IMG/VR virus record: IMGVR_UViG_3300042350_004191
Span: 1 to 64,000 of that record
Strand: one strand, 5' to 3'
DNA: 64,000 nucleotides
Shown: positions 1,343 to 44,831 of the stretch, piece by piece
How positions within the stretch are numbered: position 1 is the first letter of the stretch
Layout: each line of letters opens with the position of its first letter
The notes under the pieces: model-generated
What the model saw: only the letters and a program-made list of their open reading frames with translations
The model's database searches: none
Told to the model about the DNA's origin: nothing
Translations under genes and position numbers: made by a program

Positions 1343-1834
1343 TTATAAAAATTCGTCAGAATTTTTTTTATAATACTCCAAACCTTTGTTTATTAAAGCT
1401 TTTTTTGCTGCTTCAATAACGTCTGGTTTATCTTCCAATTCATTGATTTTAAGCTGACCTTGCCAAAAATCATAAACATATTTTTCTTCTTCGGTTTCTA
1501 CTCCTGAAGAATTTTTAGTTTTTACCATTTCAGGTATTTGAATAGATATGTTTTTAATTTTTATATCTGGATTATCTCCAGCAAATTCACCACCAGGATA
1601 AGTTTGAACTCTACCACGACCTTCAAAATAATCATATTCAGGTTCTTCATAAGTCACATCAGGTGTAATATCAAGTTCACCCGAAACAATATATGTTTGT
1701 CCGTTTATATCTAAAGAAATAAAATCAGGTAATGGATCAGATGTATAACCAATCTCAAGGAATTTACCACGTTCTTCTTTAAGAAGAATTTTTGAATATG
1801 CTTCAGCTAAAAATTTAGAATCTTTGTCTTTCAT
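1343..1834 (-). CDS. Hypothetical protein with shared N-terminal leader (MKDKDSKFLAEAY..LLKE)
   Basis: ORF; TAAATA 7 nt upstream of ATG. Confidence 0.7.
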   Translation of the reverse strand: MKDKDSKFLAEAYSKILLKEERGKFLEIGYTSDPLPDFISLDINGQTYIVSGELDITPDVTYEEPEYDYFEGRGRVQTYPGGEFAGDNPDIKIKNISIQIPEMVKTKNSSGVETEEEKYVYDFWQGQLKINELEDKPDVIEAAKKALINKGLEYYKKNSDEFL

Positions 1835-1848
1835 TATACATTATTTAC

Positions 1849-2343
1849 TCAGTAAGGTACGCCAAATGCTTCGCAAAGTAATTGAACAGCGTCTTTGTCT
1901 ACCTTATCGTCTGATTGAACAACATCCGTATAAACACCAGAACCATAATCTCCATATGGGTCACTAGCTTCGATATCCGCTGTAATCGTAGGTGTTGGAG
2001 CTTTTACTGTAGTTTTATCTTCGTTTACAGTTTTAATCTTATTCAGAATAAGAGTTAATAGTTGAAGGTTTGAAAAGTCTGAGTTTGTATTTTGTACAAA
2101 TTCAGTAATTTCTTCTTTCGAAAATTTGCCTCTTAATGCTGAAAAGGGATCTTGGTATTGACCGAATACAAAATGAGGAAGATATCTTACAGCAAGCATT
2201 GCACTGTCTTTAATAACATGAAATGCAGAAGCATTTTGAATAGTTACTCCTGTAGCAGGATTAATGCTGGCTTTCTTAGCCGCATTATAAAGCTTGGCTT
2301 CTCTTACTGAACTGTTTGTTAATATTTTTTCAATAAACTTCAT
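1849..2343 (-). CDS. Hypothetical protein
   Basis: 164-aa ORF within a minus-strand operon. Confidence 0.65.
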   Translation of the reverse strand: MKFIEKILTNSSVREAKLYNAAKKASINPATGVTIQNASAFHVIKDSAMLAVRYLPHFVFGQYQDPFSALRGKFSKEEITEFVQNTNSDFSNLQLLTLILNKIKTVNEDKTTVKAPTPTITADIEASDPYGDYGSGVYTDVVQSDDKVDKDAVQLLCEAFGVPY

Positions 2344-2542
2344 TTGTTTCTAAAAACTTTTGATATAATTTTTCAAGATCACGAATGTCGTTTTCTGCTT
2401 CCGTCATTTCTTTTAAAAGACTTTCACATTTTGATTTATCACACGTATTGTATAAATCTAATACTTCGTCTTTCAAGTCTTGTATTTGTAGTTCAATTTC
2501 GCTTAGTTCTTTTAAATCTTTGTATACTTCATTTTCCATCAA
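2330..2542 (-). CDS. Small acidic coiled-coil protein
   Basis: ORF overlapping its neighbours in the operon. Confidence 0.55.
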   Translation of the reverse strand: MMENEVYKDLKELSEIELQIQDLKDEVLDLYNTCDKSKCESLLKEMTEAENDIRDLEKLYQKFLETNEVY

Positions 2543-2721
2543 TACCTAATTACTGTTTTTTGTCCAGTTTCAAGGTTAGTGATTTTATATGTTAGTTTTT
2601 GGCTTGGGAAATACCGATCATATTTGGAACGATATGACAAGATTTTCTCATGAGATTTGAAAGGTGACAACATCACTTCATAGAAATCGTTGTCATTAAT
2701 TTTTCTTTCGAGTTTAAACAT
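2539..2721 (-). CDS. Hypothetical protein
   Basis: ORF coupled to neighbours. Confidence 0.5.
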   Translation of the reverse strand: MFKLERKINDNDFYEVMLSPFKSHEKILSYRSKYDRYFPSQKLTYKITNLETGQKTVIRY

Positions 2722-3842: not shown

Positions 3843-4484
3843 TTAGATCTCGACTATATCTAATTTGGCCGTCCAGTTATAGGGTGAACCTGTAGAACCA
3901 CCTTTAACATTAATTTTTAAAGTTTTTCCAGTATTCGTATCATCGGCTTCAATAAAAGCATCAGTATTTAAGTCTTCTCTAGAATGAATCATCTTTGTAG
4001 GTATGCCTACAATACTAACTGTACCTGTAGAATTTCTTTTAATCAATCCTGTAAATTCGATATTTGTAGAATAATTTGAAATATTGTTAACTCCAATAAT
4101 AAAAACTTTAAAGAACCAAGACTTTCCTAAAGACATTGTTAAATAAGAAACAGCATTAATATCAGGAACTAATGGAGTATAAAAGGAATCATTTATTGTT
4201 GTTGCTTTATATATAAAAGTACCTGAACGATTGTTATTTGTACCTAATAAAAAGGGAGCATCCGCGCTTAAAGTTTTTAATACAGTTAAAACACCAGTGT
4301 AATAGCCATCTTTAAAGTTCATAGCTAAAGAACTTACGGACACTTTAAAAGTATCGGGAAATGCTTGTCCGGGACTATTTATGTCAAAAAAGTTTGCAGG
4401 TAATATACATGTTTGCCAATTTGGATCAAATTGAGCCTTTACATAAGGTGTCAGTTCGCTAATTCTTTTAGATGTCGTTGCCAT
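3843..4484 (-). CDS. Probable virion/fibre-associated protein
   Basis: KRISEL N-terminal motif; beta-rich C-terminus; TATAAATA upstream. Confidence 0.55.
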   Translation of the reverse strand: MATTSKRISELTPYVKAQFDPNWQTCILPANFFDINSPGQAFPDTFKVSVSSLAMNFKDGYYTGVLTVLKTLSADAPFLLGTNNNRSGTFIYKATTINDSFYTPLVPDINAVSYLTMSLGKSWFFKVFIIGVNNISNYSTNIEFTGLIKRNSTGTVSIVGIPTKMIHSREDLNTDAFIEADDTNTGKTLKINVKGGSTGSPYNWTAKLDIVEI

Positions 4485-6157: not shown

Positions 6158-7750
6158 TTATCTACTAATCTCTTCCCAATCCATTGAACCAAAGACATTT
6201 GTAGTATCACTATCAGAAGCTACAACCAAACTCAATTCATAGAAAGTATTGTTTAAAGAATTTCTTTCAAGTTGAAATTTGAATAGGGCTTCTTTTAAGA
6301 TATCTACTTGTGTAGAACCTTGATTTGATGTTGTAAAATACCCACTTGCTAAAGTTCTTCCACCAGTAATAGCTGTTGCATCAAGTTTATATTGTACAGC
6401 AGAATCATCTCCAGCACTCACCCATGTTCCACTTCCACCAGAAGTTACTCCGCTTGCTATAACTTTCCAATTATAATAACCAGCAGATTTGGCAAGTACA
6501 GATAATGCCGTTAAGATAACAATAGCATCTTGTTTATCAGCTTTAAGCCTCATTGTTACAACAGGATAAAAAACACCTTTAGAAGTTAATGCTTTTGGAG
6601 TTTCAATCAATGTGCCTACAGCTTGTTGCAACCCTCTAAGTTCATAACCACCTTCTGATATTACAGTAGAACATACTTGTTTTAATGTTTTAGTACCACC
6701 TGTTGTGGTTGTTTTATTAACAATCTCATATCTAAGAGGTAAGGAAGCTGTGGTGATATAAGTTGAAGCAATTCTGTTAGCATGGTGGAATGAATGACAA
6801 ACAATAAATTTACCATCGATAACAAACCCAGTTCTTACCGTTCCTAAACCAAGCCATTCAATATCCATCCACAAAATTTGTGCTTTTGTAATATCTAAAG
6901 TAAATCCAGAAGGTCCAGTTCCGTTTAATTTGTCACCATTCCAAGCTGATACAGGTACTATAATTTCTGAAGAAGGAGAACCATTTACTAATGTTCTTTC
7001 AACAAAACTCATTACACCATCATCTAGTTGAAAATAGATACCATTATCTTGTCCAAAATACCCAACTCTCTGTCTTAAATTTGCAGTAGAAGGAGCCATG
7101 ACAAAGGTGTTCATGACTAATAACGATTTGCCGGGTTGATAGGAAAACACTTTTGTTGTTTCTCTTATCGCACTTGCTCCTGTTGTATTGGTAACATTTA
7201 ATTCCATCAATCCCTGTGATACATTGAATGAAACCGAACCTCCATTTGCGGATAGTGTAGACCATAAATTATTATCTCTATAACGATGTGAAGAATCAAA
7301 TAAAGTCATGGGAGAAGATGTTCTCAATCTTCCAAAAGCATCAAGCTGTGTTGGTTCTGGTGTTGTTATACTTGTTACGGTATTTGTAACTTTAACATTT
7401 AAAGAAGATGTTGGTGCAAAAACTGTAGCAAAATTTCCATCTTTATCACCAATGGTAATATCATCAACAGAAGATTCTAAATCTTGGGATATTACCCTTA
7501 AAGCATTTAAACCACTACCAGCATCTACAACATCCACTCTTAAATTGGAATTATGATCTTTTAGTTCTACGGCACCGATGCTAACATCTTTAGCAGAAAG
7601 AGTTACAGTAAAATCATCAAAATTTGTAACATAAGATGCTTGTGCAAATAATTTTCTGTTTGCATTATTTTCAACTTCCAACCAAGAATTATTATAACCT
7701 ATATTACAATTGGGCGGTATAGAAGAAACACTATTTATTAGATTATACAT
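6158..7750 (-). CDS. Beta-rich probable structural protein
   Basis: DAFGRLRTSSPMTLFDS and YQPGKS motifs recalled from aquatic phage proteins; TAAGTA upstream. Confidence 0.65.
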   Translation of the reverse strand: MYNLINSVSSIPPNCNIGYNNSWLEVENNANRKLFAQASYVTNFDDFTVTLSAKDVSIGAVELKDHNSNLRVDVVDAGSGLNALRVISQDLESSVDDITIGDKDGNFATVFAPTSSLNVKVTNTVTSITTPEPTQLDAFGRLRTSSPMTLFDSSHRYRDNNLWSTLSANGGSVSFNVSQGLMELNVTNTTGASAIRETTKVFSYQPGKSLLVMNTFVMAPSTANLRQRVGYFGQDNGIYFQLDDGVMSFVERTLVNGSPSSEIIVPVSAWNGDKLNGTGPSGFTLDITKAQILWMDIEWLGLGTVRTGFVIDGKFIVCHSFHHANRIASTYITTASLPLRYEIVNKTTTTGGTKTLKQVCSTVISEGGYELRGLQQAVGTLIETPKALTSKGVFYPVVTMRLKADKQDAIVILTALSVLAKSAGYYNWKVIASGVTSGGSGTWVSAGDDSAVQYKLDATAITGGRTLASGYFTTSNQGSTQVDILKEALFKFQLERNSLNNTFYELSLVVASDSDTTNVFGSMDWEEISR

Positions 7751-7775: not shown

Positions 7776-8912
7776 TTAGTGAATAATCAAATATGTTCCT
7801 CGAACATCTCGTCTACTAGCAGACAAGTCAGATTCACCGGGTAAAACAATAACGTTATACTGTCCAGCATCACCTTTAGGAGTGTCTTTTAGTTCGTCAA
7901 TTGTTAATAAAGTTTTTGGATCAATATTATATTTTTGAGAAATAATGCTTTTTGTTGCATCAACATTATTATATTTCCATTTTTTATCGTCACCTATTTC
8001 AATATATTTGAAACGAGTAATTGCATAAAGTTCTGGTTCTTTTACTTTGTCCTCAACATTTACTATGTACGAAACTTTATCTTTTTTAGGATCGATTAAT
8101 TTTTCTTGTTCTTTTCTTGCACCATATGAGAAATTAAAAATAACATTTTCTGGTGGATTTGGAAAAGCTTTGGTCATCTCTACTTCTTTTGTATAAATGT
8201 AATGATCAACCATGGGCGTGTTCTTTACAATATCCATGACGATATTAAAGAATTTTGGAGATAATAAATCGCCAGAATCATTCCAACGAATTTGTACTCT
8301 TTTGTTTCTATGTTTTACGGCGGCTAATTTTATTTCTGCTTCCAATTGACCTTGAAAACTTTCAGGATCATTGAACAAATAATTTAGTGTTCTGTTTTGA
8401 AACATAGAAACTTCTGGAAAGAGTGTATAAGATCCATGTTTTGCATAACAAACTAATTGACATGCACCAGCGGATGGACATGTATCTACAATTTTGAATT
8501 CTCCAGTATCCTCATCTATTACCAAACCTTTTAATGCTGGTAAAGTAGTATTATAAAATACTGTATCTTCAGTAGAACTCTTTTTCATTTTTGCGTTTTG
8601 GCGCAAGAGTTCTTCGGGTCTTTTAGTTAAAATATTTTTAAAAGCATCCAGATCTACAGTTTCTCCGCTTGGTGTTTGGACCAAGACTCTTTGTGCAATA
8701 GAAGCATGAATATGAGGCATATGCAAGTAATCTTGCTTCTGTGTTTTAGGGTCTACTTTTTTGACTCTTTTCTTTTCGACTACTCTATTGATATAATCAA
8801 CAAGTTTTTGGGAATCGATGGGTCTTGTTGTTCCCATTGAAGAATCGAAGGCTTCTCCAAGACGAACACCCTCATACAAACCTTCCAGTAAAATTTGATC
8901 TTTTGAACGCAT
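7776..8912 (-). CDS. GP88-like Cys-motif (Fe-S/radical-SAM-like) protein with shared N-terminal leader
   Basis: CPSAGACQLVCYA, RWNDSGD and YIYTK motifs; N-terminus MRSKDQILLEGLY. Confidence 0.7.
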   Translation of the reverse strand: MRSKDQILLEGLYEGVRLGEAFDSSMGTTRPIDSQKLVDYINRVVEKKRVKKVDPKTQKQDYLHMPHIHASIAQRVLVQTPSGETVDLDAFKNILTKRPEELLRQNAKMKKSSTEDTVFYNTTLPALKGLVIDEDTGEFKIVDTCPSAGACQLVCYAKHGSYTLFPEVSMFQNRTLNYLFNDPESFQGQLEAEIKLAAVKHRNKRVQIRWNDSGDLLSPKFFNIVMDIVKNTPMVDHYIYTKEVEMTKAFPNPPENVIFNFSYGARKEQEKLIDPKKDKVSYIVNVEDKVKEPELYAITRFKYIEIGDDKKWKYNNVDATKSIISQKYNIDPKTLLTIDELKDTPKGDAGQYNVIVLPGESDLSASRRDVRGTYLIIH

Positions 8913-12071: not shown

Positions 12072-12108
12072 GAAAATATTTACACAAAACAAGTGTAAGT
12101 ATTAAAAT

Positions 12109-12816
12109 ATGAAAGATAGGGATCATAAATTATTGGAAGAAGCTTATAAAAAAGTTTATTTAAAAGAAGAAGAAGAGAAATATAACATGGACGAAGTTCC
12201 TAGTGACCAAGAAATGGAACGTGCATTGGAAAAATATTACCAAGAACACGAAAACCCAGACGAACTTACCAAAAAACTTTTCACATTAAAATCTTTAAAA
12301 AGTTTCTTTGAAGAAATGAAACAAACAAGAGATAGTTGGAATTCTGCATATCCAAAAGATAGAAAAACTACAATAGCTGATGCAATAAACAGCATATATT
12401 CCGATACATATAAAGATGTACATGGAATAAGAATGACTCCGAATGTAACAGGAAGGTTCGCTCTTTTCCCTGAATACCATCCACTTATTTCCATGGCATT
12501 TTCTTATTTCAGGCTTTATCGAGAAGATGAATTAACCAGAGACGAAAGAAATCTAGGGTACGAAAACCGCGAAGTACTTTATGATTTAGAATTGAAGATA
12601 GATCGTTTTATTGATGATATAAATGAAGATGCTGATCTTCCTAGTATAGCCAAACAAATATTCGATATGATCGAATCGGCAAATTTTAAACAGGACAACG
12701 ACAATTTTTACAAAAATAATTTGTTGGATTCCGTGAGAACCTCTATAAAGAGAGCCTCAAATCTTGATGAGAACGAAAGAAAATATTTGTTGGCAAATTT
12801 ACCAGAAAAAATTTAA
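12109..12816 (+). CDS. Hypothetical protein with shared N-terminal leader (MKDRDHKLLEEAY..LKE)
   Basis: ORF; TAAGTA 7 nt upstream of ATG. Confidence 0.7.
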   Translation: MKDRDHKLLEEAYKKVYLKEEEEKYNMDEVPSDQEMERALEKYYQEHENPDELTKKLFTLKSLKSFFEEMKQTRDSWNSAYPKDRKTTIADAINSIYSDTYKDVHGIRMTPNVTGRFALFPEYHPLISMAFSYFRLYREDELTRDERNLGYENREVLYDLELKIDRFIDDINEDADLPSIAKQIFDMIESANFKQDNDNFYKNNLLDSVRTSIKRASNLDENERKYLLANLPEKI

Positions 12817-13082: not shown

Positions 13083-13283
13083 TCAACCACCATTTCCACC
13101 GCCACCGTCTCCACCACCAGCAGCACCATCTCCTGCACCAGTGCCAAAACCATAGCCAGCACCATACCAAGGATATCCCCATGTTCCATAGGGTCCGATT
13201 CTTCTGCGACCAGAAGAAGACTTTCTTTTCTTCTTGGTCGTTCTTTTTCTCTTTTCCAACAAAAATTCTTTAAAGGAGATCAT
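13083..13283 (-). CDS. Basic/Gly-rich peptide with T4 internal-protein-like N-terminus (MISFKEFLLE)
   Basis: Resembles the T4 capsid-targeting sequence MKTYQEFIAE; TAAGTA upstream. Confidence 0.6.
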   Translation of the reverse strand: MISFKEFLLEKRKRTTKKKRKSSSGRRRIGPYGTWGYPWYGAGYGFGTGAGDGAAGGGDGGGGNGG

Positions 13284-13312
13284 TTTATATACTTACTTAT
13301 ATAAATATAACA

Positions 13313-13981
13313 GTGAGAAATAAAGATCAAATACTTTTAGAAAACTTATACAATTCCATCTTAGAAGCAAAAGTGGTAATGGAAGACCCTAAAAGTCTGA
13401 TCGGTCAAATTGTCGATGTCCATCCAGCAATTTCTGGCACACCAGAAAGCGATCCTATGCTTTATATGGCATGGTCCATAAAATCCCTAGCAACAGGAAA
13501 AGTTATCCATAATACCAGAACACTATTGTTAAAAGACTGTACGGCAATAATCGACCATGATAAAGTCAAAAATTTTCAACTCAACCCAAATAAAGGAACA
13601 AAAACCCCTAACCTATTAGTAAGAGGCACAGTATTAGACATAGACTTTGATGTGTCTAAAATATCTAATATCCTATCAAATGGAGATTGGAAATCAATAA
13701 CTTATAATCCACACAAACACAGAGAATATGTATACAAAGACAAACTACCCGAATGGTGGAACACTGACGAAAGATTTCCCCATGATAATCCAAGAATCCC
13801 AGACCTAGCTAAAAAAAGATTGGAAGCATCAGAAGAAAGATCTAAAGAAAATTTCTCATATAATGAGCTTAGTAAAAAAGACCCAAATGAAAACATTTCA
13901 AAGTTTTCCTGTGAAAATATACTTTTAAAACAATACCTTAAAAGAGGAGAAGACTATATGTGGGTAAAAGGTGTATTATAA
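13313..13981 (+). CDS. Hypothetical protein with shared N-terminal leader (MRNKDQILLENLY..ILE)
   Basis: GTG start; TATAAATA upstream. Confidence 0.7.
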   Translation: MRNKDQILLENLYNSILEAKVVMEDPKSLIGQIVDVHPAISGTPESDPMLYMAWSIKSLATGKVIHNTRTLLLKDCTAIIDHDKVKNFQLNPNKGTKTPNLLVRGTVLDIDFDVSKISNILSNGDWKSITYNPHKHREYVYKDKLPEWWNTDERFPHDNPRIPDLAKKRLEASEERSKENFSYNELSKKDPNENISKFSCENILLKQYLKRGEDYMWVKGVL

Positions 13982-14019
13982 TAGGGTACAAGTTTACAAA
14001 ATTAGGTTATATAAAGGCA

Positions 14020-14547
14020 TTATAACAAATTTTGTATTTTATATAAGTTTTTGTATTCCAAAGCAAATCTTGAAGTATCGTAGGTTATATTTTTCACCTT
14101 GGTCCCTTTAGAAATAAATTCGGCCTTTTGATGATATTCTTCCTTTGGTATAAAACCACATATCCATGCCAAGGAAAAATCGTTTTTTATTCTACTGAAT
14201 ATATAAAAATCCACTTCCCTGTTCCTCTGATCCTCATAGATAGTGCCTATATAATCTATATGTGGTTTAAAATTACAACCTTGAGCCTTGGAATCAAAAG
14301 TTCTTTGTTTAGAGTTTTTGAAATCATATTTTACATCATCACTATAATCTAATATCTTAATGGTATGTTTTATGGCTACTTCTGCCAAATATCCGGTCAA
14401 TCGTATTTTTTCCCACTTTTGCTCAGTCCTATGAGTCCCATATTTTCCAAATCTCCTTTCAAAAACTTTATTTCTTTCTTCGGCTTCTTTAACCATCTCA
14501 GGAGTTATGATTACTTCCATAATGTCATTTCGATCTTGGACTTTCAT
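14020..14547 (-). CDS. Putative PD-(D/E)XK restriction-endonuclease-like protein
   Basis: GYLAE...YD...FDSK motif and DFYIF..AWICG. Confidence 0.55.
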   Translation of the reverse strand: MKVQDRNDIMEVIITPEMVKEAEERNKVFERRFGKYGTHRTEQKWEKIRLTGYLAEVAIKHTIKILDYSDDVKYDFKNSKQRTFDSKAQGCNFKPHIDYIGTIYEDQRNREVDFYIFSRIKNDFSLAWICGFIPKEEYHQKAEFISKGTKVKNITYDTSRFALEYKNLYKIQNLL

Positions 14548-14864
14548 TTGTCAGGATATATTATCATATTCTATAGGAAAATCAAATAATAGGTGGACTA
14601 GGGGTATATTATAGGGTAGGGGGTGTATATTTTTATACAGGGGGTAGGCAATGCCCCCCCACCGACTTTTTTATGACAAACTCTATGGGTGTTTTTTTCT
14701 GGCTTGGGTCTGTTACTATGACACTCTTTCAGTGGTGGACTGTGTTGTGTCATAGTGGTTTCCGTTTCATCTGGTTTGTATCAGAGTGCCTGTCACTTCG
14801 AGGTCGAGTCTTTACAGCACCGGACAGATGACAACAGCACCGGAGGGAGCAACCGATACGGCGC

Positions 14865-14895
14865 AAAAAAAACCCTCTCCTTTTGGAGAGGGTTT
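14865..14895 (-). terminator. Rho-independent terminator
   Basis: CCCTCTCC-TTTT-GGAGAGGG hairpin with an A8 tract on + (U-tail on -). Confidence 0.85.
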
Positions 14896-14914
14896 CAGTG
14901 GGGAAGATTTCGGA

Positions 14915-15148
14915 TTAGGAAACCGGAGCCTTCTTCAGGTCATGGATGGGCGCAGCCTTTGCCTTGCCAACCTTGGGGAGGTTGGTGGCGCAGGAGCGCA
15001 GAGCAAAGCGCACCGCATCGGATTTGCTGATGCCCAAGGTGAGCATGATGGTGGACAGAGCCGCCTCTGTTTCAGCTTCCCAACGGAAGGTTCCGCCGAG
15101 GGCTTTGTTGGTTTTGTATGCGCGTTTGGTGGTGGTGATGTTTCTCAT
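14915..15148 (-). CDS. Ribbon-helix-helix (CopG/Arc/MetJ-like) DNA-binding protein, 77 aa
   Basis: Start re-called at 15148 from promoter position; GGTFRWEAETEAALSTIMLTLGISKSDAVRFALR fits the RHH pattern. Confidence 0.65.
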   Translation of the reverse strand: MRNITTTKRAYKTNKALGGTFRWEAETEAALSTIMLTLGISKSDAVRFALRSCATNLPKVGKAKAAPIHDLKKAPVS

Positions 15149-15158
15149 AACGGTGATG

Positions 15159-15187
15159 ATAGTAGTCTGGATTACTTGTAAACACAA
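15159..15187 (-). promoter_or_regulatory. Boxed early-type promoter
   Basis: TTGTGT-ttacaagtaatccagac-TACTAT; ATG 10 nt downstream. Confidence 0.75.
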
Positions 15188-15280
15188 GCACAAATGTAGG
15201 ACAATCTGGGAGGGTAAGAGAGGCAAGGGGATGACAGCACCAGCACCGGAGGAGCATCGAGGTATGGCGCATCGAGGAGA

Positions 15281-15316
15281 AAAAGAAAACCCCTGTCACC
15301 TTTCGATGACAGGGGT
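15281..15316 (-). terminator. Rho-independent terminator
   Basis: ACCCCTGTCA/TGACAGGGGT stem plus A-tract. Confidence 0.8.
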
Positions 15317-15336
15317 GGATGCCACACGCCGCTCTA

Positions 15337-15852
15337 TCAGAAACCATCGTTGTATGGTTCGTAAGGTTCGTTCAGACCTGATGCCAGCCATTCGGTGACA
15401 GTGTTCCGGTCTTCGAGGATGATGTCACTGGCGACCCAGTAGTTGAGGATATCCTCAGTGAGGGTGGAGGGGTTGTAGCCTCTCTGGTAGAACCTACCAT
15501 TGACAAAGGTGCAGAAGGCGGCGGTGCAATCGACATCCCTCTCGATGAGTTCGTACCTCTCGATGGTCTGACCGAAGGATGCACCCTTGGTGCCAGTGAA
15601 GGTGATCTTCCGAGTGTAGAAGTTGCTGTGATCATCTTCATCAAAGAAGTTCTCAGGCAGTAGGCAGCAGTCCATCTTGTGTTCCCTACAGAGGTAGCCT
15701 TCGAGTTCGGTGCAGTGAAGGTCACAGATGATTTTCGCATCGGTGATGGACGGGTATTGATCGTCCTTGGTATCCGCGATGTGCTTGGGAGCAGTCGTGG
15801 TGTTGAGGTAACGGTGTTTGATGATGTTGATGAGTTCGGTGAGTGTGTCCAT
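15337..15852 (-). CDS. Early hypothetical protein
   Basis: Start re-called at MDTLTELINII, 10 nt after the -10 box. Confidence 0.7.
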   Translation of the reverse strand: MDTLTELINIIKHRYLNTTTAPKHIADTKDDQYPSITDAKIICDLHCTELEGYLCREHKMDCCLLPENFFDEDDHSNFYTRKITFTGTKGASFGQTIERYELIERDVDCTAAFCTFVNGRFYQRGYNPSTLTEDILNYWVASDIILEDRNTVTEWLASGLNEPYEPYNDGF

Positions 15853-15862
15853 AACGTGTAAG

Positions 15863-15891
15863 AGACTACTATGGATTACTTGTAAGGTCGA
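15863..15891 (-). promoter_or_regulatory. Boxed early-type promoter
   Basis: TCGACC-ttacaagtaatccatag-TAGTCT. Confidence 0.75.
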
Positions 15892-15977
15892 GCTAAAAAT
15901 GAATTCCTTTTTAATTGCCAGCACCCTGTGTCATTGAGGCAAGGCGACACAGGGTGCTGTTGTAACTCAGTGCTGCA

Positions 15978-16190
15978 TTACAGAACAGGTAGGTCTTCGA
16001 CTTCGTTGACGGTGATGAGGTAGTGCTTCCTCGTTCCATCATTGTTGAACCATGTGGCTTGCACCACATTGTCCTTGTGCAGTCTGATGTAGGGAGTGCG
16101 ATAACCTCTCTCTCCCTCATCCAAACCCCTCACTACTTTAGTGATGACAACTTCGAGGTCTTCTAGGTCCTTGATGTCTTTAGTCTTCAT
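15978..16190 (-). CDS. Early hypothetical protein
   Basis: ORF, ATGA-coupled to the upstream ORF; hairpin at 15919-15958 follows. Confidence 0.6.
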   Translation of the reverse strand: MKTKDIKDLEDLEVVITKVVRGLDEGERGYRTPYIRLHKDNVVQATWFNNDGTRKHYLITVNEVEDLPVL

Positions 16191-18106: not shown

Positions 18107-18116
18107 AACAGGAAGG

Positions 18117-29583: not shown

Positions 29584-29673
29584 GAAATAATTTCGAGAAA
29601 GTTTTTGTTGGTGAGATAGTAATTCCTTGTAAAGTCAAGCTTTTTGTGATTGTCTTACAATCGGTGTTACGAA

Positions 29674-29708
29674 GAAAAAGAGCAGGGACTTTTGATCCCT
29701 GCTCTTTC
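29674..29708 (-). terminator. Terminator (possibly bidirectional)
   Basis: AAAGAGCAGGGA-CTTTTGA-TCCCTGCTCTTT. Confidence 0.8.
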
Positions 29709-30191: not shown

Positions 30192-30446
30192 TTAGTCAAT
30201 ACTTTCTGTTAGGAATTCTGGAATGTTTTGAATTGATGCTTCTGGTGCTTCAACAATGTCGAGAGCATCATACAGTTCATTGTATTTCACAAGACTGCAA
30301 AGATCTTCATAAAGACAATCTTTAGCGTGTTGAACCATGCTTTCATCATTCAGATCAACATAGTATCCCAAGTCTATATGAACCTTTCCCAATCTTGGAG
30401 CCTTGGGTAAGTCTTTGACACAATCGAATTCAAGTTGGCTATTCAT
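30192..30446 (-). CDS. Hypothetical protein
   Basis: ORF. Confidence 0.55.
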   Translation of the reverse strand: MNSQLEFDCVKDLPKAPRLGKVHIDLGYYVDLNDESMVQHAKDCLYEDLCSLVKYNELYDALDIVEAPEASIQNIPEFLTESID

Positions 30447-30491
30447 AGTATTGGTATGATATGATTTTTAATGTGGAATGTCAATTCTTTT

Positions 30492-30998
30492 TTAGCAGAG
30501 TTCCTTTTGAAGTTTCTTGGGTGCGCTCTTGATCGGAGAGTGTTCATGGTCGTGATTATGCAACCAGTTTGGATAGCTGAAGTATTCTCCGCAGAAGTCC
30601 ATACCTTCTTCGATATACGTCAAGCGAAACTCCCGACCAGTAAGCAGGGAAAGAGTTTTGACAATACCGATAGGAGGACTCCATGCGGTTTCAAAACCAA
30701 TACCAGTAGGTTCTGCATAGTAGACTTCACCGCCACCTTTGGTTCCCCAATTCTCCACGCACCAATCCCATGCGCTATCTGCACCATACTTGCGGATAAG
30801 TTTCTGACGCAACTCAAGTCGAAAGGCAGGGCTGTCGAGATTGTCATCCTTATCCGCTTTTTTGAGTGCGGTTGGGATGGGACGAATCTTTTGGAAAGAA
30901 AGGTTTCCCTTTTTGTCCATGTAGTCTTTGAGAACATCCAAGATAGAATCATTGGTATCCTCGTTTAACATTAGTGTATTGCTGCAATAGTTAGGCAT
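30492..30998 (-). CDS. DUF1281/YubB-type ferredoxin-like fold protein
   Basis: MPNYCSN, WCVENWGTK, FETAWSPP and Y.EEG..FCG motifs. Confidence 0.8.
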   Translation of the reverse strand: MPNYCSNTLMLNEDTNDSILDVLKDYMDKKGNLSFQKIRPIPTALKKADKDDNLDSPAFRLELRQKLIRKYGADSAWDWCVENWGTKGGGEVYYAEPTGIGFETAWSPPIGIVKTLSLLTGREFRLTYIEEGMDFCGEYFSYPNWLHNHDHEHSPIKSAPKKLQKELC

Positions 30999-31170
30999 GG
31001 TAGTATTTCTATTTGGTTTTTAATCTTCGAGTTCTTTCATGTTATCGACTACGATTTGACAAGCCATATCTTTGACTTCATCCAAGTATTCGACAAGACC
31101 GAATTGTGATTCGAGCATACAAATCAGGTCTTCCTGAATTTGTTCGCTGACTCTTGCTATTTGTTTTTTC

Positions 31171-31419
31171 TTACCCATTGAAGTATGTCTCCATTTCTTC
31201 TTTTGTTAGTGGTGTGATGTGTTCCACTTCCATGTCACTCATCTCGAATGATTGAAGTGAAGCAGCACCAGTTGTTTCGAGGAAGTTGTAGTCCAACTCT
31301 TGAATTGATCCGTCTGCATCTGTCTTGTTCTCCGCGATGACATCGAGAGAGAACGAGACTTTGTAGGTGTAGCGTTTCATGACAGGCGCGATTAGATCAA
31401 ATGTCGCTGTGCTCGTCAA
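31171..31419 (-). CDS. Hypothetical protein
   Basis: ORF in operon. Confidence 0.5.
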   Translation of the reverse strand: MTSTATFDLIAPVMKRYTYKVSFSLDVIAENKTDADGSIQELDYNFLETTGAASLQSFEMSDMEVEHITPLTKEEMETYFNG

Positions 31420-31726
31420 GAACTTTCTTTACGTAGTGCTCGACTTTGTTCCATGTCGTTCCCTCATTGGCATCCACATAGTTGTAGAGGTAATTGGAAA
31501 CAATCATTGCTTCGCGGGTAGTGAGATCTCTTGGAGCCTTGGCACAATAGTCTTCAGGTGTCCAGACTTCGAGATAGCATTCAGGATACTTTTGTTGAAG
31601 AGCAAAGAGTTCGGTTAGGAAATCCTGTTTACTACCAAACCCCTTTCCATAGTCCTGATCAGGATAGACCTCTTCGACTACTTGACGGATTTTCTTTTTG
31701 TTTACTTTTGGTTTCATGGTTTTCAT
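31397..31726 (-). CDS. Hypothetical protein
   Basis: ORF in operon. Confidence 0.6.
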   Translation of the reverse strand: MKTMKPKVNKKKIRQVVEEVYPDQDYGKGFGSKQDFLTELFALQQKYPECYLEVWTPEDYCAKAPRDLTTREAMIVSNYLYNYVDANEGTTWNKVEHYVKKVLDEHSDI

Positions 31727-31739
31727 TTGGTTTAATTGT

Positions 31740-32204
31740 TTATCCTACTTTCCAGTATCCATAGACACATCGTTTGCCGTCCCTCGAACAATTGTGGGTA
31801 TCATGAATGACCCCATCAATAAGGGCGACTAAGTGTTTGGAGACACTGAGAATGTATCGACCATGCATTGGAACCTCATAGGGTTTCATGTGAGCAGTGC
31901 AACCCGTTCCGATTCCCATGATAGGTGTCCACTTGGCTCCCATATGATCCATGATCTTCTTAATGGTGTTACGATAAACGCCTGATCGAGCCGAAGACTT
32001 GCCACGTTTGCGTTTACCTGTCCTTTCATTCGAGGACATCTTATTCACAAACTCATAGACTTCGAGGTAGTTCTTTTGAAAAGCAATTGAGATTGCTCGA
32101 ACAACACAGTCACCCGCAGATCCTTTGAATCCTGCTTCGTGTCTGCCCCCGTCATTGTATTGGAAGGCGAGTTGGTTATTCATCGGAACCCTCCTGCTTG
32201 GCAA
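31740..32204 (-). CDS. Conserved phage hypothetical protein
   Basis: YNDGGR..AGFKG..GDCVVRAISIA and H....IDG..HDT motifs. Confidence 0.7.
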   Translation of the reverse strand: MPSRRVPMNNQLAFQYNDGGRHEAGFKGSAGDCVVRAISIAFQKNYLEVYEFVNKMSSNERTGKRKRGKSSARSGVYRNTIKKIMDHMGAKWTPIMGIGTGCTAHMKPYEVPMHGRYILSVSKHLVALIDGVIHDTHNCSRDGKRCVYGYWKVG

Positions 32205-32367: not shown

Positions 32368-32458
32368 TGCAGGGTATGGGAATCGAACCCATGCTCGTCC
32401 CTCATCTAGGGAACACAGATTATAAGTCTGTCGGTGCTTCCAGTTACACTAACCCTGC
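32368..32458 (-). tRNA. tRNA-Ile(UAU) with long variable arm (91 nt)
   Basis: GCAGGGT/ACCCTGC-A acceptor; anticodon arm ACAGA-CTTATAA-TCTGT; variable arm GTTCCCT-AGATG-AGGGAC. Confidence 0.85.
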
Positions 32459-32467
32459 TGGAAATTG

Positions 32468-32540
32468 TGGGGCGGGAGGGAGTCGAACCCCCAACCAAGC
32501 GATTATGAGCCGCCTGCTCTAACCATTGAGCTACCACCCC
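32468..32540 (-). tRNA. tRNA-Ile2(CAU, lysidine type); elongator Met less likely
   Basis: GGTTAGAGCAGGCGGCTCATAATCGCTTGGT closely resembles bacterial ileX-type tRNA as recalled. Confidence 0.8.
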
Positions 32541-32558
32541 AAATAAAATGTAAAAGAG

Positions 32559-32632
32559 CGTCTCCATCTGGGATCGAACCAGAAACCTACAGCTTAGAAG
32601 GCTGTTGCTCTATCCAGTTGAGCTATGGAGAC
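32559..32632 (-). tRNA. tRNA-Arg(UCU)
   Basis: Anticodon arm ACAGC-CTTCTAA-GCTGT. Confidence 0.93.
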
Positions 32633-32638
32633 AAAGGG

Positions 32639-32721
32639 TAGCGAAGGTGGGACTCGAACCCACACGCTGTTGCCAGCAACGGATTTTAAGTCCGTTGTGT
32701 CTGCCATTTCACCACTTCGCC
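32639..32721 (-). tRNA. tRNA-Leu(UAA)
   Basis: Anticodon arm ACGGA-CTTAAAA-TCCGT; long variable arm. Confidence 0.93.
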
Positions 32722-32730
32722 ATAAAGTTT

Positions 32731-38225: not shown

Positions 38226-38768
38226 TCAGACTATTTGAAAGTGTCGAACATCATTTGGATCGTCAGACTTGACCCCGAAAATATTTGCGAGATAAAAACC
38301 ACCTTTCTTATTCTCGACATAAACTGGTTTAGGGATATTTAAATGAATTAAAAGCTTTTTGAGAAGGTCAACTCGATCTGAATTGAAACCAAATCCATCA
38401 GAATCAATAAATGATTTCCAGAAAGAAACATATGATACATCCATCTCACTTGTCTTACCTAATATGATACCCAGACTATCAACATCAATATTCTCGAAAG
38501 CTGATCCACCTTTACCAAAAACAAACAGACCATCCCCTTCTATTCCTTTTCTTTCTCTGACTTTTCTTAATAGATAAGAATGAGAAGGCATTGTCTCATC
38601 TTCCAGATGAGCATAAAATATCGTTTTGTTATCTTCATCAAATGCGAACAAGTATGCTTTTTCGGAAAAGAAATCTCTTGGGTATTGCCTACCATCCAAA
38701 CCAATAATCTTGTCTGGATTTTCTTTTAATAAAAATTCTTTTTCGTATAAAAATTTTACAAAATTCAT
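38226..38768 (-). CDS. Hypothetical late protein (start re-called, MNFVKFLYEKEFLLKE)
   Basis: TAAGTA just upstream of ATG 38768; the longer call runs through a terminator. Confidence 0.65.
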   Translation of the reverse strand: MNFVKFLYEKEFLLKENPDKIIGLDGRQYPRDFFSEKAYLFAFDEDNKTIFYAHLEDETMPSHSYLLRKVRERKGIEGDGLFVFGKGGSAFENIDVDSLGIILGKTSEMDVSYVSFWKSFIDSDGFGFNSDRVDLLKKLLIHLNIPKPVYVENKKGGFYLANIFGVKSDDPNDVRHFQIV

Positions 38769-38815: not shown

Positions 38816-39504
38816 GTATTGTATTAGAGTAACGATGCAACTACTTTTTTAGCCCAACGAAATAATCCGAAAAAAATCTGAGCGATTTCTTTCAAATCTT
38901 CTCGCTGTATCGTTCCAACAAATCCAACTGTTCCATAGGGTCCGAAGACTATTCCTAATTGATGAGTTTGGTATTGTTTCATGTATTTTCATCTCCTTTC
39001 ACTTTATACTTAACAGCATTATCTATACCAAACAAGTTACAATATTGTAATACTTTATAACCTGTTGAATACGTGGAGGATAAAAAGTTTAAATGTTAAA
39101 ATTTCTTTCTTAATAAAATAGTAAAGAAGTATGGGCAAGTTTATTATGTAATAATAAGTTAACCAAAATTCAAACAAACATCTTTTGACCAAATATCTAA
39201 TTTTGTTTGTAAACATATATTTTTTTACCTTTTACTTCTTTTACCTTTACTTCTGGTTTAATTTTCTTTTCCCAAACTATATTATCATAGTTGTTTTTAT
39301 AGTTTTTGGAAAAACAATTTCTCGGTTTATCTCCTTTTCCTGCACTCATAAATTATTTTGAACAAGACTGAATTAAGAAAGCAAAACTGAAAAATAAAAC
39401 TACCAGTAAAGATGAACTGAAAATTATTGAAAACTTATTTTTCATAGCTTATTACTTTAGCTTCTTTTGGGTGTTTTGTCAATCTTTTTTGTAAGTAATA
39501 ATAT

Positions 39505-39714
39505 ATGAGATCAAAAGATGACATTATGTTACAAGAAGCTTATGAATTAATTCTTGAAGGTAAAAAGAAAAAAGAAACAAATAAAAAGAAACCCAATCCT
39601 TGGGCTGTTTGTAATGCTTCAACTGGTGGAAAAAAGAAAAATCCAGAAAAATTTGAAAGTTGTGTAAAAGGTGTTAAAAAGAAAACAGGATTTAAAGATA
39701 AAAAGAAAAAGTAA
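39505..39714 (+). CDS. Basic small protein with shared N-terminal leader (MRSKDDIMLQEAY..ILE)
   Basis: TAAGTA upstream; NPWAVC...KFESCV. Confidence 0.7.
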   Translation: MRSKDDIMLQEAYELILEGKKKKETNKKKPNPWAVCNASTGGKKKNPEKFESCVKGVKKKTGFKDKKKK

Positions 39715-40059
39715 ATGAAATCAAAAGACGATAAAAATCTTTTAGAGGCTTATTCAACAGTTTTAAAAGAAAATAGCTGTGGGATCATGGGTGATATGAT
39801 CGTTGCTCCAACCGAAACCGGACATCCCGAACAAACAGATTCTTCAAGAGAACAAGAAGAAACAAGTATGGATGAAAATAATGCTTCAGTCATTTTACAA
39901 AAAGCAAATGTTTTAGTATCCTTATTACAAAGCGGAGTTCGCTTAGATCCTTGGATGCAACAAAAAATTACTCTTGCTGCTGATTATCTTACAAGTGTAA
40001 CCGATACAGCAACATTCGATCAGCAAAAGAATCAACACCAACCTCATCATGAAATCTAA
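39715..40059 (+). CDS. Protein with shared N-terminal leader (MKSKDDKNLLEAY..LKE)
   Basis: ORF; LDPWMQQKITLAADYL motif. Confidence 0.7.
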   Translation: MKSKDDKNLLEAYSTVLKENSCGIMGDMIVAPTETGHPEQTDSSREQEETSMDENNASVILQKANVLVSLLQSGVRLDPWMQQKITLAADYLTSVTDTATFDQQKNQHQPHHEI

Positions 40060-40420
40060 AGACGATAAAAATTTACTCGAAGCATACGAATCTGTTTCTA
40101 AATTACAAGTAGAAGCAGAATCTAAAATATATCAACCCAAACAAAATATTGCGGGAGGAACTAGCACATCTTTAAAAGACTTAACATATGCAAAAAAAGC
40201 TGAATATGACGAAGATTTAGCTGAATGGATCAAAACTCGTATATCCAGAGAGCTTCCACAAGATTTAGATGTTAGAGAAGATCTGGTTAAACTTTATAAA
40301 AAACTTAGCGCGAATCAATTGGGTAAAGAAATTACAAAACCCAACGATGAAAAAGAATCTCAAGAAACCCTTACACGCGCACAATATGCAATGTCTGGTT
40401 ATAGTGGGCCAAATTCATAA
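40049..40420 (+). CDS. Protein with shared N-terminal leader (MKSKDDKNLLEAY)
   Basis: First 13 aa identical to the preceding gene; remainder unrelated. Confidence 0.7.
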   Translation: MKSKDDKNLLEAYESVSKLQVEAESKIYQPKQNIAGGTSTSLKDLTYAKKAEYDEDLAEWIKTRISRELPQDLDVREDLVKLYKKLSANQLGKEITKPNDEKESQETLTRAQYAMSGYSGPNS

Positions 40421-41988: not shown

Positions 41989-42478
41989 TTAACAGAAAGT
42001 TTTCAATTAATCTTTTGTAATAAAGATAGCTAATCTTATCATTAACTTTTAATTTATCAAGCATTGATGGTTTAGCTGTAGATAAAATTTTATCATTCAT
42101 TATAGAACCTTCTTCCGTAGTGTGTCCTAGACCTAACATATGTCCAGCTTCATGTGCAACTGCTCCTGAAAGATATTCTCCTTTCAATACATGATCGTAT
42201 TCTTTATTTAAAAGAACCGTTTTTGTTCTAGGTGAATATTGTGCAACCCAATCCGGTTTTTTAATTCGGCTTGGATCTGCATGTTCAATTATCAAATATG
42301 CACTATCAATTGATTCTGTTCTTTTAAAAGCCAAACGATTTGTGGTCCAATAATCTAAACCTCTGGCTATTTCTTCTGGATATGGACCATCATAATAATA
42401 TTCTATCAAAAGAGATTTTTCTCTTTTGAATTCAAAATAGAATAAAACACCTATAGCTATGATTAGCAATAATTTCAC
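41966..42478 (-). CDS. Membrane-anchored matrixin-like (metzincin) metalloprotease
   Basis: HEAGHMLGLGH plus SIM Met-turn; N-terminal TM; promoter at 42485-42513. Confidence 0.85.
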   Translation of the reverse strand: MKLLLIIAIGVLFYFEFKREKSLLIEYYYDGPYPEEIARGLDYWTTNRLAFKRTESIDSAYLIIEHADPSRIKKPDWVAQYSPRTKTVLLNKEYDHVLKGEYLSGAVAHEAGHMLGLGHTTEEGSIMNDKILSTAKPSMLDKLKVNDKISYLYYKRLIENFLLNDTTANN

Positions 42479-42516
42479 AAAACAAGTATGGCTATTTTTA
42501 CTTGTATTGTCAAACC

Positions 42517-43797
42517 TTATTTAAGTAATTCTTTGATAAAAGCAGCAGCCCATTTCTGAGCTTCGCCTGTGTTAGCGGCTCCACGGATATTCCCATCAAT
42601 AAAATTCATAACAGGCTTCATTTGTTCATCGGATATACTGCTTAATTTTTCAGCAGCTTTCGCGTATTGTTCAGGACTTAAATCTAGATTTTTAGCAGCA
42701 TTAACAAATGCTGGTGAGGGTCCATTAGACCAGTCACCCTGACCATTAATTCCTTTTTCAAATAAAGCTGAATCAAATTTGTTTTTAGCTACATCAAGTG
42801 GAGATTCTGGATTAAATGGTGTTTCATGGTATCTTTCGAAATAAGAATCAGGATTTAACCCTGCATCTACGGGTTGATCGATCAACTCAGCACTGGGTTC
42901 ATTAGCTGTCAGTCCCATCTCACTTTCTAGACCATTAATATATTTGGAAAGATAATCAATACTAACCCCTAATATAGGTGCAGCTACAGCAAGAATAGCT
43001 GCTTGTTTAGCGACTTTCTTTGGATCAGGTCTTTCTCCATTTAAAACATCTGTTGCTGCTTTTCTTAATGCACCAGCAGTTGCAGCTTTTAACATTGTTG
43101 CAGGAATACCAGCTATGCCAGCAATTGATGCTAATGCTCCACCAGCAGCAGCACCTAAAGCCAATAATGGTGCAGCCTTACCAACGAACTCTACTCCTCT
43201 TCCAATCGAATGTCTAATATCACTTAATTTAGATTCTGTTGGTTTAATTGAATACTCTGATTCTAATTTTGCGATCATTCCATCAATTTGTTTTTTTACC
43301 GAATCATCAGCACCGGAAGTTGTTCCTAAGTCCCTCTGAAGTTCTTTTAGGTGTGAACCAACTTTCTTTTGGAATATCTCAAATCTTTTGTTCACTCTTT
43401 GTGATTGAACATTGCTTTCTCCTGTGGGTGTTTTTTCTCCCATAGCAAATCTTTTCCATCCAGAAACATTAGAAGCAATTCTAGAACCTAATTTTTCCTC
43501 AACATAAGACTCTTCTTTGATTTCTTCTTGTGAAAAAGACTGTTCTATTTCTTTTTGGTCAGTAAAATCTTTAGGAGATTTTTTAATTTCGTCAAAAAAT
43601 TTATTGATTAACTCTCTATATTTTTCTTGTGCAAGTAATTCAGCCTCTAAATTTTCTATGGCCTTTTTTAATTCGTCTACATTATCTTCTATTTTTTGTT
43701 CGAGATCTGTAGGTAAACTATTTTCAACTTCCTCTTTTAAAAGAACTCGTTTAAAATAAATTTCTTGTAATGATTTAAATTCTTCTGTCTTGTTCAT
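42517..43797 (-). CDS. Probable internal/ejected virion protein with hydrophobic Ala/Gly segments
   Basis: Leader variant EEFKSLQEIY..VLLKE; APLLALGAAAGGALASIAGIAG segment. Confidence 0.6.
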   Translation of the reverse strand: MNKTEEFKSLQEIYFKRVLLKEEVENSLPTDLEQKIEDNVDELKKAIENLEAELLAQEKYRELINKFFDEIKKSPKDFTDQKEIEQSFSQEEIKEESYVEEKLGSRIASNVSGWKRFAMGEKTPTGESNVQSQRVNKRFEIFQKKVGSHLKELQRDLGTTSGADDSVKKQIDGMIAKLESEYSIKPTESKLSDIRHSIGRGVEFVGKAAPLLALGAAAGGALASIAGIAGIPATMLKAATAGALRKAATDVLNGERPDPKKVAKQAAILAVAAPILGVSIDYLSKYINGLESEMGLTANEPSAELIDQPVDAGLNPDSYFERYHETPFNPESPLDVAKNKFDSALFEKGINGQGDWSNGPSPAFVNAAKNLDLSPEQYAKAAEKLSSISDEQMKPVMNFIDGNIRGAANTGEAQKWAAAFIKELLK

Positions 43798-44831
43798 AAT
43801 AAATTACATTCTTTCAAAAATTCATTAAAGGGATTATATGATTCGTTTTTATATGAATACCTTGTTTTAGTTGGCCCGACTTTAGTTTCTGTTCTTGTCA
43901 CTCCAGATGGTTTTTTAGTTGTTTTAACTGGGGCGTTTTTTTGTTTAGACCATTTTTGGTTTAGTGTTTCTATCAAATTAGGATTTTTAATTATTTCTGC
44001 TTTTTTTGTTTTTCCTTTTTTACTGGATAAAACTACCCAATTTTTACCATCATACACATATTTGAAAATACCATGTTCAACAGTATCATTTTTCTTTGGG
44101 GATTCTATTGCTGTTTTTGATGTACCTCTTACAGGTGTAATTTCACCTTTAGGTTTTTTTGGTTGTTCTTGTGTTTTTTGTTGTGGAACTTCTTCAGTTT
44201 TTTGTTGAGTTGGTTCTGGTGTTTTATTTGAGTTATCTAAATCTTCTTTTCTAAATAAAGGTTTGCCGCTTACAATAGTAGATTTGATCTTACCTGTTGC
44301 TGCTTTATTCTGTAATTCTGTTTCAGATATTTTTAAATAATCTGCTGCACCTTTTATATCAAGATAACCTTGTACATTAGTTGTTGGTTTGGAAGTTTCT
44401 GGTGTCGGTTCACTAGTTGGTTCTGGTTGTGAAGTTGTTTTTACTTCCGGTGTGGTTGTTGAAGTTTGTGTGGGATTAGTTAAAAATTTCTCAAGATTTT
44501 CTATTTCTTTTAATCTTTGTGCTATAATTGGAAAATCTTTTTGAAGCGTATCGGGATTGGGATCTACTTTAAAAAGTTTCAAATCATTTTTGAAATCAGC
44601 AATTTCTTGTTGGACTTTCTGAACAAAGGATTTTAGTAAGGAACCTTGTTGGGCTTTTGCGTACTCTGTTCTTGCACTTGGACGATCAGCCGTATCGCCT
44701 GTAAGCTTTCCTCCAATATTTTTCATCAGTGTACCAGCACCTTGTTTGATACCAGCACCCTGACCTTTTAATCTGTCCCAAATCCCCTCTTGGTATAATT
44801 GTTCCAAGAGCAAATCATCATTATTTCTCAT
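43794..44831 (-). CDS. Leader-bearing protein with internal excisionase/MerR-type HTH
   Basis: MRNNDDLLLEQLYQE; YLDIKGAADYLKISETELQNKAATGKI..LFRKEDLD. Confidence 0.7.
   Translation of the reverse strand: MRNNDDLLLEQLYQEGIWDRLKGQGAGIKQGAGTLMKNIGGKLTGDTADRPSARTEYAKAQQGSLLKSFVQKVQQEIADFKNDLKLFKVDPNPDTLQKDFPIIAQRLKEIENLEKFLTNPTQTSTTTPEVKTTSQPEPTSEPTPETSKPTTNVQGYLDIKGAADYLKISETELQNKAATGKIKSTIVSGKPLFRKEDLDNSNKTPEPTQQKTEEVPQQKTQEQPKKPKGEITPVRGTSKTAIESPKKNDTVEHGIFKYVYDGKNWVVLSSKKGKTKKAEIIKNPNLIETLNQKWSKQKNAPVKTTKKPSGVTRTETKVGPTKTRYSYKNESYNPFNEFLKECNLL

Follow-up and report, generated by a model that had tools for sequence, protein, structure and literature searches.

Why should otherwise unrelated, presumably late proteins of one virus begin with the same short stretch of residues? 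The question arises in the first 64 kb of the 210,586-bp viral contig IMGVR_UViG_3300042350_004191 (the whole of this stretch is referred to as the window), where eight open reading frames (ORFs) have in common an N-terminal leader of about 20 residues with the consensus M-[KR]-[NS]-K-D-Q-I-L-L-E-x-[AL]-Y-x-x-[IV]-[LI]-x-E, while a ninth begins with a diverged version. This class of leader, here named KD-type, is probably a second class of T4-type capsid-targeting propeptide, longer than that of T4, as judged from the sequence comparisons described below.

In phage T4 the capsid-targeting sequence (CTS) comprises the first 10 residues, of which residues 4 and 7 govern targeting while 8 and 10 govern processing, and the protease gp21 cuts after L/I-X-E (PMC9026906). 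With Asp in place of the P1 Glu, T4 leaders still target their proteins but are no longer processed (PMC9026906). The T4 internal proteins (IPs) are diverse, and the CTS is their sole common part (PMC3012670). Read from NC_000866, the T4 leaders are MKTYQEFIAE (IPII and IPIII) and MKTFKEF (IPI).

Occurrence of the leader in the window

All nine ORFs proposed in the first-pass annotation exist and have the N-termini quoted there. The positions it gave for minus-strand ORFs are those of their low ends, and the leaders lie at the high ends (nt 1834, 8912, 44831 and 43797). Its count of at least nine tagged genes also stands, except that a further gene with a T4-type leader, 13083-13283 (-), was overlooked. 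The KD-type ORFs, followed by one doubtful candidate, are as follows (a slash marks a junction between leader and body; h, hydrophobic residue; pI, isoelectric point).

1343-1834 (-): KD-type leader ORF, 163 aa; leader MKDKDSKFLAEAYSKILLKE at 1775-1834, h-x-E sites ending at residues 11 and 20; TAAATA at 1842-1847, 7 nt before the ATG; predicted mature part acidic (pI 4.4)
7776-8912 (-): KD-type leader on a GP88-family body (PF17338, 4e-35), 378 aa; leader at 8853-8912; junction RLGE/AFD
12109-12816 (+): KD-type leader ORF, 235 aa; leader MKDRDHKLLEEAYKKVYLKE at 12109-12168; TAAGTA at 12096-12101
13313-13981 (+): KD-type leader ORF with a GTG start, 222 aa; leader at 13313-13366, ending ILE; TAAATA at 13302-13307; body with a weak match to L5 gp82
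39505-39714 (+): first gene of an array of three tagged genes, 69 aa; leader at 39505-39558; TAAGTA at 39492-39497; mature part Lys-rich (pI 10.3), resembling a T4 internal protein
39715-40059 (+): second gene of the array, 114 aa; leader at 39715-39771 (…STVLKE)
40049-40420 (+): third gene of the array, 123 aa; first 13 residues identical to those of 39715; a clear h-x-E site at residue 11 only
43794-44831 (-): KD-type leader on a helix-turn-helix (HTH) containing protein, 345 aa (HTH_17 match 1e-4, below cutoff); leader MRNNDDLLLEQLYQE at 44787-44831; TAAGTA at 44845-44850
42517-43797 (-): diverged KD-type leader, 426 aa; leader at 43732-43797, ending LLKE; translationally coupled to 43794-44831
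38226-38768 (-): possible degenerate leader (MNFVKFLYEKEFLLKE/NPDK), 180 aa, of low confidence; no hidden Markov model (HMM) or Pfam match

The strict pattern [KRN]D...L.[EGNQ][AL]Y has eight matches in the six-frame translation of the window, all of them within four residues of the start codon of ORFs of 69-378 aa, whereas residue-shuffled translations gave a mean of 0.06 matches and a maximum of 2. The leader of the ninth ORF, 42517-43797 (-), falls below the HMM threshold. Its orthologues grade from MNKTEEFKSLQEIYFKRVLLKE through MNTRTKEVYTISDIYSNRILLKE to MTKDLHNLTSLYESVLIKE, the last of which is the canonical form minus one residue, and because this series reaches the canonical form the ORF is considered a diverged member of the class.

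Anatomy of the leader

The sequence logo of 180 distinct leaders reads M1 [KR]2 [NS]3 K4 D5 Q6 I7 L8 L9 E10 x [AL]12 Y13 x x [IV]16 [LI]17 x E19, and information content drops to background past about residue 20. A single LxE cleavage site had been proposed at first. There are in fact two h-x-E sites in the leader, one at residues 8-10 and one at 18-20. In 88% of leaders the first has its Glu at residue 10, and in 77% of the leaders from related loci and 90% of those in the global set (see below) the second has its Glu at one of residues 18-20. In the AlphaFold2 (AF2) model of the GP88-like protein the leader forms a separate helix, residues 4-19, with a confidence score (pLDDT) of 58-72, ahead of a body with pLDDT >90. 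The hydrophobic doublets L8L9, A12Y13 and I16L17 make a broad stripe. A Sec or Tat signal peptide was considered and rejected, as the consensus is charged throughout (K4, D5, Q6, E10, K15, E19) and has no hydrophobic run.

Leader swapping on GP88-like proteins

A search with the GP88-like protein of the window recovered 106 homologues, and the 55 with the common body start (A/K)-F-D-x-x-M-G were used to compare the junction between leader and body. Their leaders are of several types: KD (26), a T4-like type here called FK (12-14), xFNKLY (5) and MNLRLLIEE (2), the rest being unclassified. The FK-type leader of these homologues reads MITFKKYLEQLxE, which may be compared with MKTFKEF of T4 IPI. 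Across five leader types, P1 of the junction is E in 54/55 and P3 is L/I/V in 50/55. The predicted junction is therefore a conserved (L/I/V)-x-E, the gp21-type motif anticipated in the first-pass annotation, and it appears to be kept even where another leader type replaces KD.

A maximum-likelihood tree of the GP88 bodies requires at least 14 changes of leader type, compared with a mean of 25.1 when types were shuffled, and as few changes were found in 0/200 shuffles. Well-supported sister pairs include proteins that differ in leader, namely P0005 (KD) with P0007 (FK) and P0052 (KD) with P0054 (FK). Since KD and T4-like leaders interchange on one body, they appear to be functionally interchangeable modules on the same cargo, joined to it at a gp21-type site. 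This swapping is the decisive evidence for the capsid-targeting reading.

The head genes and their setting

A T4-type targeting peptide would be expected to be accompanied by a prohead protease, and such an enzyme is encoded by the same genome just past the window. It was found by a walk from the last window gene to NCBI contig JBFDGW010000300.1 (L486), which is 100% identical to window nt 52918-64000. At 15034-18344 of that contig, about 4.4-8.8 kb past the end of the window, gp21, a 73-aa gp67-like protein, a gp22-like scaffold and gp23 are encoded in a row.

52048-53973 (+), window: T4-type portal gp20 (PF07230, 1.6e-95), about 29% identical to cyanophage gp20
62918-63589 (+), window: last window gene, start of the walk into the rest of the genome
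15034-15705, L486: gp21-type prohead protease (Peptidase_S77, PF03420, 8e-29)
within 15034-18344, L486: gp22-like scaffold (T4_CASP, 7e-4, below the Pfam cutoff)
within 15034-18344, L486: gp23 capsid protein (PF07068, 5e-90)

By its gene content the window evidently derives from a genome with a T4-like head. Relatives have the same gp21-scaffold-gp23 module; the gp21 of the window genome departs from the pattern IGE[ML]NHPQ in reading TGELNHPQ. In eight related loci (L032, L089, L092, L096, L099, L100, L101, L147) tagged cassettes of 86-356 aa directly follow the gp21 stop codon, while in L017 and L019 this slot is empty. Both the swaps in the GP88 tree and the presence or absence of cassettes in this slot show the leader behaving as a transferable, cargo-independent module.

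The wider gene order at L486 10685-20672 is gp13-like, TnsA_N-like, gp21, the 73-aa gp67-like gene, gp22-like scaffold and gp23. Portal and head module are about 11 kb apart, with collagen-like fibre genes between them, whereas the T4 order is 20-67-68-21-22-23. The window has no near match at the DNA level among deposited phages, and its portal and major capsid protein (MCP) are at most 34% identical to those of any of them. The leader-bearing clade consists of uncultured, ~210-kb T4-like phages, probably from freshwater.

A T4-type leader in the same genomes

The KD leader is not the only one in these genomes. The overlooked gene of the window carries an FK-type CTS:

13083-13283 (-): gene with FK-type CTS, MISFKEFLLE/KRKR..., 66 aa; TAAGTA at 13290-13295, 6 nt before the ATG; divergent from ORF 13313

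Its product is strongly basic (mature pI 10.8) and has a tail rich in Gly. The FK-type consensus in the clade and in cyanophage-like contigs is M-x-[ST]-F-[KQ]-[EKQ]-[YF]-[ILF]-x-E. The two classes are present together in single genomes, as in the window and in locus L484, where a KD leader precedes a PARP-like protein, FK leaders precede three genes, and gp21 lies 4 kb off. The FK leader has position, junction, cargo (e.g. GP88-like and DUF5661 proteins) and genomes in common with the KD leader; it differs in being 10-13 aa long and recognisably like T4 IPI (TFKEF), while KD is a separate sequence class.

In cyanophage-like contigs the FK-type leader reads MKSFKQFISES…, so the classical T4-type CTS seems, from such sequences, to be conserved far beyond the T-even phages.

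The presence of a classical CTS in the same genomes could mean that the second leader has another address. It might be a helix for docking or oligomerisation at some late destination outside the head interior, such as the lumen of the tail or baseplate, the membrane or cell pole, a chaperone or a host hub protein, with removal by gp21 optional. Some leaders lack the second h-x-E site, which is in keeping with this, and capsid residence of the tagged proteins is a prediction. Nevertheless, KD and FK leaders repeatedly replace each other on the same cargo at the same junction, as expected of equivalent function, the junction fits the gp21 motif, and the cassettes lie within the gp21-gp22 head operon. 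A destination outside the head is thus considered unlikely.

Distribution of the leader

An HMM of the leader was run on 481 related loci (5.0 Mb), and the matches were checked for position. The 303 matches correspond to 211 unique proteins of 18-775 aa, and none of them is internal. Four matches lack an ATG, which is explained by a GTG start, a probable alternative start or truncation at a contig end. After removal of the first 22 residues, the tagged proteins fall into 90 body families (BLASTP, 1e-5). In a global search, a profile of 145 sequences was compared with 1.84 billion representative proteins, and at least 422 protein clusters carry the leader at E<=1e-3. Among the best 150 of these matches, 146 begin at residue 1 and the remainder at residues 7-23, behind miscalled starts. 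In the window, in the related contigs and in this library, only N-termini were matched, as the first-pass annotation had predicted for such a scan.

At the nucleotide level, a codon pattern for M[KR]xKDQILLE has 96 matching stretches in IMG/VR, where as many as seven tagged genes form an array within 6 kb. A cellular origin of the leader was rejected: in 185,579 prokaryotic species genomes (596 Gb) the same pattern was matched only twice, by chance, in short ORFs. The leader is also absent from sister clades with a gp21 at most 47% identical and from cyanophage-like loci, and tblastn of one leader against 50,697 phage records gave no match at E<=10.

Given that tagged genes lie in arrays and hypervariable slots, the shared 5' end might be no more than a trace left where recombination shuffles cassettes, the boundary of a selfish module with no function of its own. 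This reading is extremely improbable, as the peptide is conserved while the nucleotides drift, and conservation is position-specific over at least 422 clusters, strictly N-terminal and in frame.

Promoters and the level of selection

The ORFs 39715 and 40049 were initially noted to encode their 13 identical residues with different synonymous codons, and this proved correct for 6/13 of them. More generally, the codons at K4, D5, L8, L9, E10 and Y13 match the background usage of the genome. At L8, for example, both Leu families, TTR and CTN, are used (CTT 13, TTA 17, CTA 3, CTC 2). Because codon choice at conserved residues follows background, selection is judged to act on the peptide and not on a DNA or RNA element.

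Each tagged gene or operon is preceded by the late-type promoter motif TAARTA, as had been reported, the motif ending 5-13 nt before 1834, 8912, 12109, 13313, 39505 and 44831; the tagged ORFs 39715, 40049 and 43797 are operon-internal. TAARTA also precedes untagged virion genes, including that of a 530-aa structural protein (6158-7750) and the genes at 46343 and 54038.

In total, 19 window genes (e.g. 3843-4484, 6158-7750, 46343-47314, 54038-54376) have a TAARTA ending 3-14 nt, mostly 5-9, before the start, and no Shine-Dalgarno sequence is present. With this arrangement the late transcripts would have little or no 5' untranslated region, in contrast with those of T4.

It is this arrangement, a TAARTA that stops 5-9 nt short of the ATG and the lack of a Shine-Dalgarno sequence, that lends some plausibility to the shared 5' end being an RNA or translation element, a downstream enhancer for leaderless late mRNAs in which the peptide is incidental. 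However, synonymous sites vary as freely as the background and Leu codons come from both families, many genes with the same late-type promoter carry no leader, the operon-internal 39715 and 40049 do carry one, and orthologues swap in unrelated leaders, keeping only the h-x-E junction. A role in translation is accordingly scarcely credible.

Cargo

About 75 of the 90 body-family representatives have no Pfam domain. The domains recognised are two GNAT acetyltransferases, a NUDIX hydrolase, a PARP-like ADP-ribosyltransferase domain and a nucleotidyltransferase of CCA-adding/poly(A)-polymerase type with an HD domain; HTH, EAD1, DUF5661, GP88 and L5-gp82-like proteins are also tagged. T4 Alt is a packaged ADP-ribosyltransferase.

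The GP88-like body (residues 21-378 of 7776-8912 (-)) gave a confident model (pLDDT 91), which had no match in the PDB at E<0.01, only weak TIM-barrel and MoaA-like matches. It has a C-x5-C-x3-C motif in which C151 and C155 are invariant and C145 is conserved in at least 90%. The label "Fe-S protein" given earlier to this GP88-like body is unproven, with three conserved Cys and no significant fold match.

Several of the enzymes in this cargo are potentially toxic (PARP-like, GNAT, NUDIX, nucleotidyltransferase), and the junction looks like a protease site. The leader might then be mainly an inhibitory, zymogen-type propeptide that silences toxic effectors until it is cut by gp21, with targeting secondary or absent. 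But one 20-residue sequence is unlikely to inhibit at least 90 unrelated folds, including basic peptides of 50 aa, the AF2 model predicts a leader detached from the body, and the equivalent leader of T4 is a targeting signal (PMC9026906). Inhibition as the main role is very unlikely, though it is compatible with a targeting function and could hold alongside it.

Comparison with known systems

The KD leader resembles the T4 CTS in being N-terminal, in occurring on otherwise unrelated, putatively late proteins and in ending with (L/I)-x-E followed by a small residue. Residues 1-10 of KD are laid out like MKTYQEFIAE (basic 2, hydrophobic 7-8, E 10), the cargo is diverse and lies in hypervariable loci in both cases, and both genomes have gp20, gp21, gp22 and gp23. 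The KD block differs from the T4 CTS in being twice as long (~20 aa), in having a second h-x-E site and in its invariant D5, L9 and Y13. At least 422 cargo clusters bear it, as against three IPs in T4, and within its clade it coexists and swaps with a genuine T4-like FK CTS.

In phages phiKZ, 201phi2-1 and SPN3US, gp21-like proteases (gp175, gp245) cut the propeptides of head and ejection proteins (PMC9026906, PMC10052503). There, too, many packaged proteins are cut after Glu at a short motif, and propeptides may hold several sites (PMC9026906, PMC10052503). The motif in those phages is S/A-x-E, however, no single leader has been reported across unrelated cargo, and they belong to another phage lineage. 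A propeptide of the phiKZ type was rejected for the KD leader: P3 at the junction is L/I/V and not S/A, and the head genes are of T4 type.

In P1 DarB, the N-terminal ~30 residues are enough for a foreign protein to be loaded into the capsid; the cargo there is an effector of anti-restriction (PMC9024508). Both DarB and, putatively, the KD proteins bear a signal for capsid targeting at the N terminus, but DarB is a single cargo in the stepwise Dar hierarchy, with no shared leader family and no gp21-type junction. The cargo-loading peptides of encapsulins are likewise short and portable, and address unrelated cargo into a shell of HK97 fold. They are usually C-terminal and uncleaved, and the shell has neither DNA nor ejection.

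A putative capsid-targeting propeptide

The first-pass annotation had proposed a distinct capsid-targeting peptide that loads diverse cargo. All predictions of this proposal that could be checked computationally held; docking on the scaffold core, cleavage by gp21, presence in the virion head and ejection into the host are steps that we infer from them. The tagged proteins would be made late, from TAARTA late-type promoters, alongside the head proteins. The helical leader would dock the cargo on the prohead scaffolding core (gp22-like, gp67-like) during shell assembly, and the gp21-type protease would cut after the Glu of (L/I/V)-x-E at the leader/body junction, residues 18-20, with a possible further cut at L8-L9-E10. 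Cleavage would free the mature cargo inside the head, from which it would exit with the DNA at infection to act as an early effector. Candidate effectors are the ADP-ribosyltransferase-like, acetyltransferase, NUDIX, CCA-adding, HTH and small basic proteins.

Several points weigh against a capsid-targeting propeptide. In sequence the KD leader is not significantly similar to MKT(Y/F)(Q/K)EF, the second h-x-E site is missing from about 10-25% of leaders, and the helical hydrophobic moment of residues 4-20 (0.206, vs 0.227 ± 0.113 in shuffles) gives no amphipathic signal. The MCP of the clade has no clear L/I-x-E at the site homologous to that of T4 gp23, where LTE/A is not conserved, and the MCP therefore gives no independent support for the presumed protease specificity. 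The N-terminal block of the MCP ends WCFE/A in most members and WCLEE/A in the window genome, with a variable Gly-rich stretch after it. At the GP88 junction, the P1 Glu could simply belong to the conserved body. The capsid-targeting reading does not account for the coexistence of two leader classes in one genome. The clade has no cultured member, and its MCP is at most 34% identical to that of any deposited phage.

Other features of the window

Besides the tagged genes, the window encodes collagen-like fibre proteins, a conserved virion protein of T4-like phages (phrog_1645), a tmRNA and eight tRNAs. The tmRNA lies at 683-1144 (-) (Rfam RF00023, 143 bits), and its tag peptide according to ARAGORN is ADEEMLLAA. 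It is adjoined by tRNA-Pro at 1268-1340; four of the other seven tRNAs are clustered at 32368-32722. Three consecutive genes at 54349-62921 (+) encode proteins of 879, 1398 and 567 aa with collagen triple-helix repeats, presumably fibres, and hold internal DNA repeats of ~74-89% identity.

A box of the form ACAAGTAATC-yr-TAGTA is found 22-24 nt before the ATG of several genes (window 15881, 19315 and 33430 (-)), and similar boxes precede 18686, 38178 and 45106. The box probably marks another class of promoter besides TAARTA. From about nt 14000 to 32000 extends an 18-kb block of 42-47% GC, compared with 29-33% in the flanks. The block is dense with small minus-strand ORFs, the upstream regions of which are A/C-rich and without Shine-Dalgarno sequences, and may represent either a region of early genes or DNA that differs in origin.

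Implications

The leaders might form an address code of several classes, in which KD, FK and at least three rarer types dock at different sites of the core, set copy number or order of ejection, and are swapped by recombination to retune effector dose. This is a tentative idea, possible but on the doubtful side. If it were true, more than 400 families of injected effectors in uncultured phages would be recognisable by the leader alone, and the whole injected proteome would be readable from sequence, a rich source of anti-defence proteins.

What stands out in the KD leader is its scale, its coexistence with a classical CTS and the repeated swapping between the two. The natural swaps on one cargo, at least 14 in number, provide comparative material on which features of a CTS are recognised by the scaffold core. 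If the KD leader is a capsid-targeting propeptide, as is probable, it would offer a second, orthogonal packaging tag for engineering protein delivery in T4-type heads, and would allow the proteins injected by uncultured phages, prime candidates for anti-defence and host-takeover functions, to be listed from sequence only. The T4 paradigm of three internal proteins and a CTS of 10 residues would then widen to cargo families in the hundreds and to at least two classes of leader that can replace one another.

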